Below, piece by piece: positions 46,229 to 57,252 of a stretch of DNA of 64,000 bases. The notes beneath the pieces are model-generated. The model saw only the letters and a list, made by a program, of their open reading frames with translations, ran no database searches and had not been told where the DNA came from. Numbering within the stretch: position 1 is the first letter of the stretch; each line of letters starts with the position of its first letter. A program made the position numbers and the translations under genes. Origin of the DNA: Octopus sinensis (lineage: Eukaryota); NCBI RefSeq assembly GCF_006345805.1, contig NW_021832716.1:6823-70822 (forward strand), read 5' to 3'.

Positions 46229-46334
46229 ATGGCCCCAAAATTTGTGGTTATGATAAGTGATGTATTCTCAAAACCTTCCAAGGCCATGAGAGAAGCCATG
46301 GCCAATGCTGATGTAGAAGATTCGATGGTTCTAG
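46229..46334 (+). CDS. THA1: THA1-like coding exon 1 ([35 protein letters not shown]); exon probably starts at acceptor 46200
   Basis: Acceptor ttttag at 46199, ATG 46229, donor G|gtaaaa at 46335; similar to the DLRSDTVTKPTxAMRxAMAxA family N-terminus. Confidence 0.82.
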
Positions 46335-55300: not shown

Positions 55301-57252
55301 TTCTTATGCAAACTTTGGTTTTATCTAACTCCATAATCGAATAATCTCGATTTGAACATCTCTAGCCTGTCTGTTCATTAATTATATATAAAAAATCAAT
55401 ATACGTGATATTTATGCACTTTTCTCATTTAGTTTCTTAAATAAACAGTGCTTGTTGTTTGTTAAAACTAGGGTCCTTTCTAAAATATGAAAGTTTTTTT
55501 TCATCTTAACAATCTCTCTCTTGCTCGCTCAATCTCTCTCCCCCTCTCACTTTCTCTCTCTCTCTCTCTCTATCTCTCTCTCTCTCTCTCTCTCTCTCTC
55601 TCTCTCTCTCTCTCTCTCTCTCTCTCTCTCTCTCTCTCTCTCTCTCTTACACACACACACACAAGCACACACACTTGTATAAATATTTATGAAATTAAAT
55701 ATTAAACCCTTTTATTTTTAGAATATTATCGCTCACGTAACATTCGTGTGTATGTGTGTGTATGTGTGTGTGTTCTTTTATTTTTATTTCTCTCAAAGCT
55801 ACGAGATAATACATAATTAATTCAAATAATATGAATAAATAAGTATTACAGTGTAATATAAATGCAAATGGGTTTCGTAAATTATTACCACCGCCTTAGC
55901 GAAGGTCGAGGTGTTGTTTTCAGTCGTATTTGTTTGTTTGTCCGTGGACAAGATATCTCAAGAACCGCTGGATGGATTCGAATGCAACTTTCAGAGATGC
56001 TTGACCTCGTGACTGGCACGAACTGATTAAATTTGGGGATCGATTCGGTACCGGACAAGGATTCTGGGTTATTTTTCCTGATTTTTTTACTTAGTTTATG
56101 AGAGAGATCGGGTTCATTTTTAGTTTTCTCGTTCGTGACAGCAATCGAGTTTATTTCAGATATTCTCATCTTAAAAATCCTCCGTGGCTAATCGTTGAGA
56201 GAACATTGATGTTGCCTTGGAGGAGGTTTGCGCTCTCTGAGTGCTCTTGTTCTGATTTTTTTATTATTTAATTAAGAATTATCTTTTTATTTAATTTTAA
56301 TTCGTGAATAGTTTCTCATTTTTGTTGATTTCAGGTCTGAAAAGTCTCTCTTCTTCAGTGGTGACAATAGAACCAGAGGAAGACCAAACTAATCTCGTTT
56401 TTATTAAAATCGATAAAGAAATGTCTTTCATCACTAACTTAACAGAACGTTTAATGACGGTATGAAAGCAAATCCCTAATTTATTTATCCATTTCATTCT
56501 GCAGAAAGTAAAGCTACTGGTTTAAATATAAATATTTGTAAAGAGGGGTAACTATGAGCGGAAATTAATAGTAAACCTGTAAATAAATATATTTTCTGGA
56601 CAGAAGGTATGGATTCGTATATAGGAGGGAGCCTAACTTTTTTTTTCCATCCAAGAGTTTGTTTTTTTAACTGAATATTCTACATGCTATTATTTACAAC
56701 TTTAGCACAGTAGCAAGCTGGCAGAATCGTTAGCATTCTGGACAAAGTGCTTGGGGACATTTCTCTTGGCTCTTTACGTTCCGAGTTCAAATGCTGCCGA
56801 GATCAAGTTTACCGTTCATTGTTTAGGGGTTGATAAAATACGTACTAGTCGGGGACTGGAATCGATATAATCAACACGTCCCTTCTCTCAAAATTTCAGA
56901 CCAAGTGCTTATAGTAGAAAAAATTGTTGATCGATTTATCTGCTATCTTCATATCTCACACGTTTTCTAAGTTCTTATAATATAAATTTCTGGCAAGTTT
57001 TATTTTATAGAATACTTCTTTGTTTTTTCGTTTTTTTATTCATTTACTTCATTTCTGTTTTTTTTTTTTAAACAGACCACAGAAGCTGAAGTGAAGGAAC
57101 TGGGTAAGGAAATCCGTGTGGGTTGTAAGCTTTGGGGTAAAGATATTCGGTTTGCAATTTGCTGTAATAATAACGAAGAAGACATAGATGATGCCATCAA
57201 GAAAGTCTGTTATGTTTTAAGGAAATTCATTTCTGAAATAATTAAAGACTAG
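46229..57252 (+). CDS. THA1: Low-specificity L-threonine aldolase-like protein (PLP fold type I), 9 coding exons, 364 aa: join(46229-46334,46861-46944,47661-47749,49167-49349,50273-50410,51792-51847,53768-53904,56335-56459,57076-57252)
   Basis: Manual splicing: all introns GT-AG, phases compatible (1,1,0,0,0,2,1,0), 1095 nt open frame to TAG. Family motifs SD, SGTMGN, SH(L)Y, CLENTHN, HVDGAR, CLNKG (PLP Lys), RKALGG.MRQ.G, TNLV, IRF. Confidence 0.93.
46861..46944 (+). CDS. THA1: THA1-like coding exon 2 ([28 protein letters not shown])
   Basis: tttcag| acceptor, G|gttagt donor, SGTMGN phosphate-binding motif. Confidence 0.93.
47324..47476. repeat. About 76-bp tandem duplication (intron 2); also a 22-bp x4 repeat at 48731-48820 and a 17-bp x5 repeat at about 51641-51725
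   Basis: Direct reading. Confidence 0.85.
47661..47749 (+). CDS. THA1: THA1-like coding exon 3 ([30 protein letters not shown])
   Basis: ttacag| acceptor, CAG|gtaggt donor; contains the PLP-stacking His. Confidence 0.93.
48090..48600 (-). mobile_element. Penelope-like 3' fragment (GIY-YIG C-terminus) in THA1-like intron 3
   Basis: Minus strand reads [40 protein letters not shown], resembling the typical R..LEQ.LIF.L.T..P.G.N end. Confidence 0.6.
49167..49349 (+). CDS. THA1: THA1-like coding exon 4 (LAGVFPRS...[21 protein letters not shown])
   Basis: tcacag| acceptor, AAG|gtagga donor, ENTHN motif. Confidence 0.94.
50273..50410 (+). CDS. THA1: THA1-like coding exon 5 ([24 protein letters not shown]...DSVTFCLNK)
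   Basis: ttgcag| acceptor, AAG|gtaagg donor, HxDGAR motif and Schiff-base Lys as last codon. Confidence 0.95.
51792..51847 (+). CDS. THA1: THA1-like coding exon 6 ([18 protein letters not shown])
   Basis: ttccag| acceptor, AG|gtttgt donor; matches GLGAPVGS; too short for the ORF track. Confidence 0.92.
51914..53172 (+). mobile_element. Tc1/mariner superfamily DD37D (maT-type) transposon, decayed, in THA1-like intron 6
   Basis: TA|CAGGGTG...CACCCTG|TA TIRs; FQ*D then 37 residues then D ([12 protein letters not shown]); several stops. Confidence 0.88.
53363..53656. repeat. Foldback element, about 115-bp arms, 111 bp upstream of exon 7
   Basis: AAATTTAGCAAACACCAG...CTTACGCAATTT versus AAATTGCGTAAG...GGTGTTCGCTAAATTT. 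Confidence 0.85.
53768..53904 (+). CDS. THA1: THA1-like coding exon 7 ([26 protein letters not shown]...AKKLVN)
   Basis: aaccag| acceptor, G|gtaaat donor, RKxLGGxMRQxG motif. Confidence 0.93.
55884..56251 (+). mobile_element. Helentron-type non-autonomous element (HINE/DINE-1-like) in THA1-like intron 7
   Basis: 5' ATTACCACCGCC.., GTTTGTTTG tract, subterminal inverted CCTTGGAGGAGG, 3' hairpin GCGCTCTCTGAGTGC, TT end. Confidence 0.65.
56335..56459 (+). CDS. THA1: THA1-like coding exon 8 ([26 protein letters not shown]...ERLMT)
   Basis: tttcag| acceptor, ACG|gtatga donor, TNLV approximates ETNIV; phases fit both neighbours. Confidence 0.87.
57076..57252 (+). CDS. THA1: THA1-like terminal coding exon 9 ([10 protein letters not shown]...[21 protein letters not shown]...IIKD*)
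   Basis: Poly-T aaacag| acceptor; carboxylate-binding Arg (IRF); TAG at 57250-57252. Confidence 0.88.
   Translation, partial: TTEAEVKELGKEIRVGCKLWGKDIRFAICCNNNEEDIDDAIKKVCYVLRKFISEIIKD

Follow-up and report, generated by a model that had tools for sequence, protein, structure and literature searches.

Gene structure and family assignment

The DNA analysed here (the 'window') is a 64-kb stretch of the Octopus sinensis genome, read as bases 6823-70822, the last 64 kb, of the unplaced scaffold VCDQ01004223.1 (70,822 bp). It contains a single gene resembling threonine aldolases (TAs), enzymes that depend on pyridoxal 5'-phosphate (PLP), and in this gene an active-site loop has been lost by deletion. 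While the original prediction made from this stretch treated the gene singly, it is a young, slightly aberrant member of a tandemly amplified, gene-converting clade of octopod paralogues.

The gene was located using tblastn, with a bacterial LtaE probe and then the octopus gene's own protein, together with inspection of splice sites; it occupies nine exons on the + strand of the window (46229-57252; Table 1), and neither probe detected other TA copies within the 64 kb. All acceptors are AG and all donors are GT, so that 8 of 8 introns are of the GT-AG type, with consistent phases, and the coding sequence of 1095 nt specifies 364 amino acids (aa) without an internal stop. The nine clean exons and 364 aa of the original prediction were thus reproduced. 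The product is identical to the RefSeq protein XP_029655666.2 (P0121), which is named 'probable low-specificity L-threonine aldolase 2' and whose locus is the same scaffold; the gene model is therefore independently supported, and the gene is already known by automatic annotation.

Membership in the TA fold family is clear from several comparisons. The protein matches the Pfam profile PF01212 (Beta_elim_lyase; fold-type I PLP enzymes, threonine aldolase group) with 274 bits against a cutoff of 27 (E = 1.9e-81), its residues 8-290 covering profile positions 2-285 of 288. Its best sequence match in the PDB is mouse Tha1 (8pum; 1.8e-80), which lies on the same animal branch of TAs and shares the C-terminal extension, and the bacterial enzymes from Escherichia coli (LtaE; 4lnj/3wlx) and Thermotoga maritima (1jg8), with the same fold and PLP scaffold, match at 2.9e-66 to 1.6e-59. 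The predicted fold is intact: an AlphaFold2 monomer model displays a predicted local distance difference test (pLDDT) score of 95.6 and a predicted template modelling (pTM) score of 0.92, and its best Foldseek match is 8pum (template modelling score, TM, 0.93; root-mean-square deviation 1.8 A; 41% identity), with bacterial TAs at TM 0.83-0.85.

Finer classification by profile is less discriminating. The protein fails the NCBIfam LtaE equivalog model NF007825 (249 bits against a cutoff of 312). The canonical O. bimaculoides protein narrowly clears this cutoff (313), and the canonical protein of Argonauta hians scores 305; that model was built for bacteria and is a weak test of octopus proteins. 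It passes the NCBIfam model NF041359 for the 'GntG family PLP-dependent aldolase' (325.6 against a cutoff of 230), as do the canonical octopod proteins, this model being broad, not separating canonical from loop-deleted proteins, and implying no common pathway or substrate. In a cyanobacterial pathway, GntG itself carries out a retro-aldol reaction with a substrate other than threonine (10.1101/2023.03.21.533663), which shows that TAs of this branch can act on other beta-hydroxy amino acids.

Table 1. Exons and other features of the TA-like gene (window coordinates; residues are those of the window protein unless a replaced residue is given)
Feature	Position	Strand	Length	Content
Exon 1	46229..46334	+	106 nt	ATG at 46229; Ile9-Ser10-Asp11-Val12 and shortened loop
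Deletion junction	46313..46318	+		Codons Val29 (GTA) and Glu30 (GAA); 15 nt missing clade-wide and 3 nt privately, from exon 1 DNA alignment of five genes
Exon 2	46861..46944	+	84 nt	SGTMGN PLP-phosphate loop; Thr57 at 46923-46925
Exon 3	47661..47749	+	89 nt	PLP-stacking His82 (47714-47716); Ser86 replacing Tyr/Phe87; clade-specific His90 (47738-47740)
Exon 4	49167..49349	+	183 nt	GVTGEC, with Gly126 (49263-49265) replacing the trans-contributed His; then conserved CLENTHN
Exon 5	50273..50410	+	138 nt	Asp169 and Arg172 (HVDGAR); Asn199 replacing Ser; Schiff-base Lys200 (50408-50410)
Exon 6	51792..51847	+	56 nt	
Exon 7	53768..53904	+	137 nt	Lys225; Glu230 replacing Gly; Arg232 (GGEMRQ)
Exon 8	56335..56459	+	125 nt	
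Exon 9	57076..57252	+	177 nt, including TAG	Carboxylate-binding Arg331 (57148-57150); Cys335 replacing His
Altered C-terminus	57208..57252	+		1-nt deletion in a T-run (~57214-57218) relative to P0001, P0003 and canonical genes, from exon 9 alignment

A loop deletion shared by octopod paralogues

The segment of exon 1 that in canonical TAs encodes a Tyr-bearing loop, GDDV(Y/F)G (E. coli residues 26-31), which extends into the active site of a neighbouring subunit, reads ADV------EDSMV in the window protein. This gap of 6 residues, which the original prediction had described as one in-frame deletion, is present as claimed, and corresponds to a 15-nt in-frame deletion common to the whole clade together with the loss of 3 nt (one Gly codon) that is private to the window copy. 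In the alignment of exon 1 DNA, the 15-nt deletion is flanked by short direct repeats, the canonical gene reading GGAGACGAT[GTTCTCAGAGAAGAT]CCA; because the site lies between those repeats, the identity of the five residues that were removed (DDVxR or VxRED) is ambiguous.

The deletion is carried by three genes in O. sinensis, two units in O. bimaculoides and two genes in A. hians, that is, by seven copies from four independent assemblies and three species. The best matches with the same gap are the O. sinensis proteins P0001 (90% identity) and P0003 (78%), isoforms of O. bimaculoides LOC106874140 (85-87%) and A. hians P0009 (57%). Exon 1 measures 124 nt in the canonical genes of the two Octopus species, against 109 nt for P0001 and P0003 and 106 nt for the window copy; an additional codon was lost independently from unit 1 of O. 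bimaculoides, leaving an exon 1 that is also 106 nt long. The second A. hians gene, annotated as the truncated protein P0027, possesses unannotated exons 1 and 2 (locus L004, BAAFZT010000065.1, 1768-1869 and 2671-2751) that carry the same loop deletion (ADVGRDPMV).

A gap of at least 3 residues in this loop was found in 0 of 213 other TA homologues, and in 0 of 129 further 50%-cluster representatives retaining the N-terminus that were recovered when a profile of the divergent clade was run exhaustively against 1.84 billion cluster representatives. A hidden exon or alternative splice site that would restore the loop was considered and rejected, as no GDD[VIL][YFLM] or related coding segment occurs in any frame of the window. 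Given the presence of the deletion in seven copies and the absence of a hidden loop segment, assembly error and a missed exon are therefore excluded, and the loop deletion is genuine; the concern that GDDVYG codons had merely been lost in assembly can be set aside.

Retained and altered active-site residues

Residue conservation was scored, using E. coli numbering, in an alignment with the same 213 homologues, and residue roles were drawn from two reviews and from the mouse Tha1 paper. Positions that are 91-100% conserved and retained in the window protein comprise Ser6, Asp7, Thr59, His83, Glu136-Asn-Thr-His139, Asp166, Arg169, Lys197, Lys222, Arg229 and Arg308, for which the window equivalents include Ser10/Asp11, Thr57, His82, Asp169, Arg172, Lys200 and Arg331, as well as Lys225 and Arg232. 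Conservation among the homologues reaches 95-100% at the positions of Lys200 (Schiff base), Asp169 (pyridine nitrogen), His82 (ring stacking) and Thr57 (phosphate loop), and the anchors of the substrate carboxylate (E. coli Ser6, Arg169 and Arg308; PMC4761611) are present as Ser10, Arg172 and Arg331. The PLP machinery is thus retained as motifs (Ser10/Asp11, SGTMGN, His82, HVDGAR, Lys200 and Arg331), as had been predicted.

Against this background, a series of otherwise conserved positions is altered. Gly26 (98% conserved), Asp27 (100%), Asp28 (98%) and Tyr30 (Tyr, Phe, Leu or Met in homologues) are deleted with the loop, and substitutions are found at Asp3 (97%; D7V in the window protein), Arg5 (96%; Ile9), Thr8 (97%; Val12), Thr35 (92%), Gly91 (87%), His126 (His 86% and Tyr 13%; Gly126), Ser196 (100%; S196N, Asn199) and Gly227 (92%; G227E, Glu230). 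The corresponding motifs, namely ISDV for RSDT, GVTGEC without its His, NKG, GGEMRQ and IRFAIC, read exactly as originally quoted. Additional features that had escaped that first reading are the change of Gly91 to His, the replacement of Tyr/Phe87 (a pocket position that is Tyr in 69% of homologues) by Ser, the change of residue 7 from Asp to Val, and the 1-nt deletion in the T-run. Position 91 is His in 7 of 7 divergent sequences aligned and Asn in unit 3 of O. bimaculoides; the His126 position is Gly in the window copy and D, G, Y or N in sister copies.

Across the divergent clade, whether a residue is kept corresponds to the subunit that supplies it. In mouse Tha1, PLP is held by Lys242, Asp211, Arg214, Thr98 and the stacking His123 of the same subunit, and by Lys267 and Arg274 of the adjacent subunit (PMC11016064), so that the equivalents of exon 7 residues Lys225 and Arg232 in canonical TAs reach the PLP or the catalytic water of a neighbour. 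In bacterial enzymes, T. maritima His125 is likewise reported to be donated by another subunit, and the E. coli active site to contain residues of three monomers (PMC6411801). Every divergent octopod copy has the same-subunit residues unchanged, and at three of them (His83, Arg169 and Arg308 in E. coli numbering) Octopus and Argonauta use different synonymous codons. Among the neighbour-donated elements, the Tyr loop is deleted, His126, the residue preceding it and Gly227 are replaced (the last by acidic or amide residues), and Arg229 and Lys222 are variable: the Arg229 equivalent (mouse Arg274) is lost in 6 of 7 divergent sequences and kept only by the window copy, and Lys222 is Ala in P0003.

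Comparison with individual enzymes leads to a similar picture. Equivalents of mouse Lys242, Asp211, Arg214, Thr98, His123, Lys267, Arg274 and Arg372 are all found in the window protein, whereas Tyr69 (chain B; GDDDYG loop) is deleted, Tyr168-His169 (chain C) correspond to Thr125-Gly126, the Ser before the catalytic Lys is Asn, and the third Gly of GGGMRQ is Glu. Similarly, equivalents of E. coli LtaE Ser6, His83, Asp166, Arg169, Lys197, Lys222, Arg229 and Arg308 are kept, whereas the bacterial His126/His125 and the Tyr30 loop, with their contributions in trans, are gone. The loss of the His counts for less than the original prediction suggested: E. coli His126 mutants are active, H126N and H126F roughly doubling kcat, in comparison with a tenfold cost for K222A (PMC4761611, PMC6411801), and for that reason catalysis without the second His is plausible.

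Animal TAs have only recently been tied to carnitine biosynthesis, as aldolases of 3-hydroxy-trimethyllysine (HTML; PMC11016064). HTML docked into mouse Tha1 is contacted by same-chain Arg372, by Tyr69 (chain B) and by Tyr168 (chain C), and an aromatic cage was described around its trimethylammonium group (PMC11016064). Chain and UniProt numbering of the mouse protein differ by an offset of +18, which was checked on Lys242; with that offset, the alignment places Tyr69 at the Tyr of the deleted loop and Tyr168 at the residue preceding the E. coli His126 equivalent. Since the equivalents of both tyrosines are lost, HTML is unlikely as a substrate, and a role of the window protein as an HTML aldolase would be correspondingly improbable. 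With the cofactor- and carboxylate-binding features of low-specificity L-threonine aldolases (EC 4.1.2.48) present and two neighbour-supplied features absent, the protein should best be described as TA-like, and be named neither a threonine aldolase nor an HTML aldolase.

The canonical octopod TAs are also unusual at these positions: P0013, P0124 and P0008 display Leu in the loop (VGDDVLRED) where most TAs have Tyr or Phe, and in two of these proteins the residue preceding the His is likewise not Tyr, so that even the canonical octopod enzyme may not have an HTML-type aromatic cage.

Gene copies, phylogeny and gene conversion

A search for a canonical paralogue, and for orthologues carrying the same deletion, had been proposed as a check on the original prediction, and both were found. 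The canonical octopod gene (O. sinensis XP_029649358/P0013; O. bimaculoides LOC106874147/P0124; A. hians P0008) has the same nine-exon structure, is 65-68% identical to the window protein, and adjoins divergent copies in both Octopus species. It keeps RSDT, VGDDVLREDPT, the His before CKTK, and SKG, in P0013 as in the others; the full-length proteins P0124 and P0008 also keep GGGMRQ and RLVTN. In O. sinensis, P0001, P0003 and canonical P0013 follow one another head to tail over ~90 kb of chromosome CM016880.1, in an array at 5.5-5.6 Mb. For the canonical gene of this species (locus L003, CM016880.1, 10001-30542), the annotation offers only truncated proteins of 237 and 191 aa, translated past the donor site of exon 6; exons 7-9 were looked for in the next 10 kb downstream and not found.

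The O. bimaculoides array has three divergent units ahead of canonical LOC106874147: the first comprises exons 1-8, the second exons 4-8 alone, and the third exons 1-9, with 30 nt missing in frame from exon 5. RefSeq merges these three TA units into LOC106874140 (L013; CM046622.1, 9.164-9.217 Mb; 10001-43441), of which isoforms X2 and X3 are composites, all ending in the single exon 9 of unit 3; this locus is either an array of partial duplicates that were merged in error or a gene with alternative exon blocks. The divergent pair of A. hians is located at 22.4 Mb of a scaffold that carries the canonical gene at 0.43 Mb. All family members agree in exon lengths, except that exon 1 is shorter in the divergent clade, exon 9 is frameshifted and longer in the window copy, exon 8 reaches 134 nt in A. 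hians P0009, and the models P0027, P0013 and P0002 are truncated or composite.

Colinearity of the window gene with P0001 begins ~650 bp before the ATG and ends ~90 bp beyond the stop codon, with an identity that is patchy and ranges over 78-97%; on account of this limited and patchy colinearity the window gene is a third O. sinensis paralogue rather than an allele. Elsewhere in the window, positions 787-2464 are 93-99% identical to ~230-bp repeated segments that lie between P0001 and P0003 on CM016880.1 (L001, 28069-29321); this match might be a sign that the scaffold comes from the vicinity of that array, or may reflect a common repeat.

Neighbour-joining analysis with outgroups unites all loop-deleted sequences in a single clade (94% bootstrap) within the octopod TA clade (92%), and places the window protein as sister to P0001 (80%). 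Synonymous divergence (dS) between the Octopus divergent copies and the Octopus canonical gene is 0.6-0.8, and that between the Octopus and Argonauta divergent copies is saturated; values above 1.7, as estimated by the method of Nei and Gojobori (NG86), were treated as unreliable, and deep dN/dS ratios (omega) were left out of the evidence. Third-position divergence was then compared exon by exon, for O. sinensis canonical versus divergent genes and for canonical genes between species. The two values are 26% versus 57% in exon 1, 7% versus 54% in exon 2, 53% versus 50% in exon 3, 39% versus 57% in exon 4, 39% versus 46% in exon 5, and 22% versus 33% in exon 6. Such mosaic divergence is consistent with an ancient duplication and later gene-conversion tracts between adjacent genes, and the deletion and its accompanying substitutions persist although exon 1 has been homogenised by conversion with the canonical neighbour.

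Independent duplications with a convergent deletion were rejected as the principal account of these data, in view of the 94% bootstrap, the mosaic divergence, and five derived states common to the clade (the deletion, loss of His126, S196N, G227E/D/Q and G/N91H), at all five of which a parallel origin needs convergence; the slippage-prone site and possible long-branch attraction keep some residual doubt on this point. No squid or cuttlefish orthologues were named among the top matches. The closest non-octopod relative is a transcript, P0010 (L006-L010; Logan contigs SRR27666058 and others), which encodes 367 aa with a canonical VGDDVYRED loop, shares 60% identity with the canonical octopus TA, joins the octopod clade in the tree (92% bootstrap), and possibly derives from another cephalopod.

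Selection on the loop-deleted clade

Comparisons between O. sinensis and O. bimaculoides yielded an omega of 0.35 for the canonical gene (p for omega < 1, 0.007), and values of 0.62 for P0001 versus unit 1 (p = 0.03), 0.51 for the window gene versus unit 1 (p = 0.0075), 0.40 for the window gene versus unit 2 (p = 0.004) and 0.21 for P0003 versus unit 3 (p = 1e-7). Pairs of paralogues behave similarly, with 0.52 for P0001 versus P0003 (p = 3e-4) and 0.34 for the two Argonauta genes (p = 3e-13). Because the between-species values for the divergent copies (0.21-0.62) are all significantly below 1, the loop-deleted clade is held by purifying selection, which is only slightly looser than that on the canonical gene. 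The dN/dS analysis that had been proposed as a check on pseudogene status is thus clear for the clade as a whole, and does not extend to the branch of the window copy alone (p = 0.35).

Proposed explanation and its alternatives

These observations are best accommodated, with somewhat better than even confidence, by a model in which the window gene belongs to an octopod-specific clade of Tha1/GLY1-type paralogues encoding a PLP enzyme with a remodelled side-chain pocket and a changed substrate. The clade would have originated by duplication of the canonical gene before the split of Octopus and Argonauta; a 15-nt slippage deletion would then have removed the Tyr-bearing GDDV(Y)G loop, and the clade would next have been amplified in tandem beside the canonical gene, with gene conversion among copies. 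In the protein itself, an internal aldimine would be formed at Lys200, with His82 stacking on the ring and Asp169, Arg172 and Thr57 contributed by the same subunit, and an alpha-amino acid would be bound through its carboxylate by Ser10, Arg172 and Arg331. PLP chemistry would still be catalysed, most simply a retro-aldol cleavage, in a pocket predicted to be wider, less aromatic and more acidic than that of canonical TAs, and the substrate would accordingly be one other than Thr, allo-Thr or HTML. Cofactor binding, catalysis, the change of substrate and the oligomeric state are all projected here from the residue pattern.

A more specific form of this model, which we regard as a tentative possibility, is that the clade is an active PLP enzyme with a substrate or reaction new to TAs, which arose once in octopods through loss of the Tyr loop and the His, with a pocket rebuilt around His90, Asn199 and Glu230, an active site that is either confined to one subunit or completed only in a heteromer with the canonical paralogue, and an octopod-specific metabolic role, to which the tandem amplification would then point. 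The expectation, in the original prediction, of either a changed substrate or reaction or a non-catalytic paralogue is borne out in part: a diverged, selectively maintained paralogue with a PLP fold fits the evidence, and the window copy's own branch does not by itself distinguish such a protein from one evolving neutrally.

Several observations weigh against the model of an enzyme with a changed substrate. When changes were polarised with P0003, the branch leading to the window copy contained 25 nonsynonymous and 9 synonymous changes (p = 0.35), of which 8 of the 25 are artefacts of the terminal frameshift; the corresponding omega, at ~0.8 (~0.55 once the frameshifted codons are excluded), is not significantly lower than 1, and this branch is indistinguishable from neutral drift. 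The C-terminal frameshift is private to the window copy, as is the change from Asp to Val at residue 7 (97% Asp), and the change from Arg to Ile at residue 9 (96% Arg) is common to the window copy and P0001. Loss of the Arg274 equivalent, which contacts the PLP phosphate from the neighbouring subunit, from most divergent copies (though not the window copy), together with Ala in place of Lys222 in P0003, could signify weakened PLP binding across the clade. The array in O. bimaculoides is partly fragmentary (one unit is without exons 1-3, and another has the 30-nt exon 5 deletion), and the sequence records of all Octopus TAs, including canonical ones, are genome-derived only and uninformative on expression. 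Finally, the AlphaFold2 model is a monomer guided by canonical homologues, and the interface lies outside its reach.

Two alternatives appear unlikely to a similar degree. In the first, the protein would be a pseudoenzyme or the partner in a heteromer, retaining its fold and perhaps the ability to bind PLP or amino acids, lacking catalysis on its own, and possibly assembling with the subunit made from the adjacent canonical gene; the divergent site of such a mixed dimer would receive its missing residues in trans from the canonical partner, to which the divergent subunit could give none in return, resulting in a modulated or half-active enzyme. The pattern in which every interface-donated element is deleted or variable and every same-subunit element is kept is as this proposal would have it, as are the absence of the Arg229 equivalent from most sister copies and the tandem arrangement of divergent and canonical genes in both Octopus species, and purifying selection is compatible with a non-catalytic role. 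However, a purely structural role would need no Schiff-base Lys, Asp169, pair of carboxylate-binding Arg residues or stacking His, all of which were kept over a saturated synonymous divergence, and the linkage is not conserved, the canonical gene of Argonauta being located ~22 Mb from the divergent pair.

In the second, which concerns the window copy and leaves the clade as a whole functional, the gene would be a recent, redundant duplicate that is decaying by drift into a pseudogene, or a collapsed or wrongly assembled copy of the P0001 locus. The unplaced 70.8-kb scaffold, the restriction of colinearity with P0001 to little more than the gene, a dS to P0001 of only 0.085 with a pN/pS (ratio of nonsynonymous to synonymous differences per site) of 0.58 (p = 0.067), the neutral-like branch, and the private Asp7Val, Gly codon loss and terminal frameshift all point in this direction. 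With respect to pseudogene status, however, the reading frame is intact over nine exons with good splice junctions (no internal stop and eight GT-AG introns), the sole frameshift alters only the last 5 codons, and the clade comparisons have p <= 0.03; the omega values of 0.40-0.51 against O. bimaculoides units (p < 0.01) are on the same side, although the path they measure is largely shared history. The window copy also keeps Arg232, which its sisters have lost, and the canonical NRCGGK segment, which is changed in P0001, and eight of the 25 nonsynonymous changes on its branch stem from the terminal frameshift. Its coding sequence diverges from that of P0001 by 6%, which by a rough estimate from general octopus heterozygosity would be far above allelic levels.

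The frameshift itself involves a T-run in which the 1-nt deletion exchanges the last 5 residues of the usual ending ...YVFNEIHF* for 10 others and lengthens the C-terminus; it may represent a homopolymer error of the assembly rather than biology. This 3' T-run is the sole suspect base in the gene, and a remaining alternative, that the loop deletion is an artefact of assembly or annotation or that the loop derives from an unannotated exon or alternative splice site, is extremely improbable: no support for it was found, the same in-frame deletion recurs across the independent assemblies, the window offers no coding segment for the loop, and the RefSeq model agrees.

Repetitive elements surrounding the gene

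The remainder of the window is occupied by open reading frames (ORFs) of retroelements of the long interspersed nuclear element (LINE) type, by repeats resembling short interspersed nuclear elements (SINEs), and by microsatellites. Two LINE-type copies in opposite orientation (16066-22455, +; 25179-29813, -) form a GC-richer block and harbor reverse-transcriptase ORFs (RVT_1, 3e-21 and 2.5e-31); the + strand copy also contains a zinc-knuckle gag-like ORF (17738-18409), and the - strand copy an endonuclease-like ORF together with an ORF (29025-29813) that has no significant Pfam match. A SINE-like repeat of ~400 bp is present in many copies (34286-34711, 39746-40178, 41337-41785, 43759-44596, 45614-45952 and 54249-54588), and is found inside intron 7 of the TA-like gene and throughout related loci. 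Intron 6 contains the remnant of a Tc1/mariner-type DDE transposase, interrupted by stop codons (52543-52993, +; DDE_3, E = 7e-5, below the Pfam cutoff). Long microsatellites consist of (GTT/AAC)n in intron 5 (51100-51460) and (CAT/ATG)n directly 3' of exons 1 and 4 (46361-46450 and 49400-49560), and a kilobase-scale CATA-type array is located at 36820-37910; the window's microsatellites generate long spurious ORFs.

Implications

A search of the literature returned no publication that joins threonine aldolase with octopus, and none that names these accessions or LOC numbers. For annotation, the RefSeq name 'probable low-specificity L-threonine aldolase 2' is not to be trusted at face value for loop-deleted genes. 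For the family, a natural lineage in which the contributions of neighbouring subunits have been stripped away, and in which the residues that anchor cofactor and carboxylate were preserved while synonymous sites became saturated, constitutes a test of what a TA active site needs. If the protein is inactive, the clade would provide a clean case of a conserved PLP pseudoenzyme; if it is active, it could offer a new substrate specificity, useful for the biocatalysis of beta-hydroxy amino acids, and could represent an octopod-specific metabolic step.

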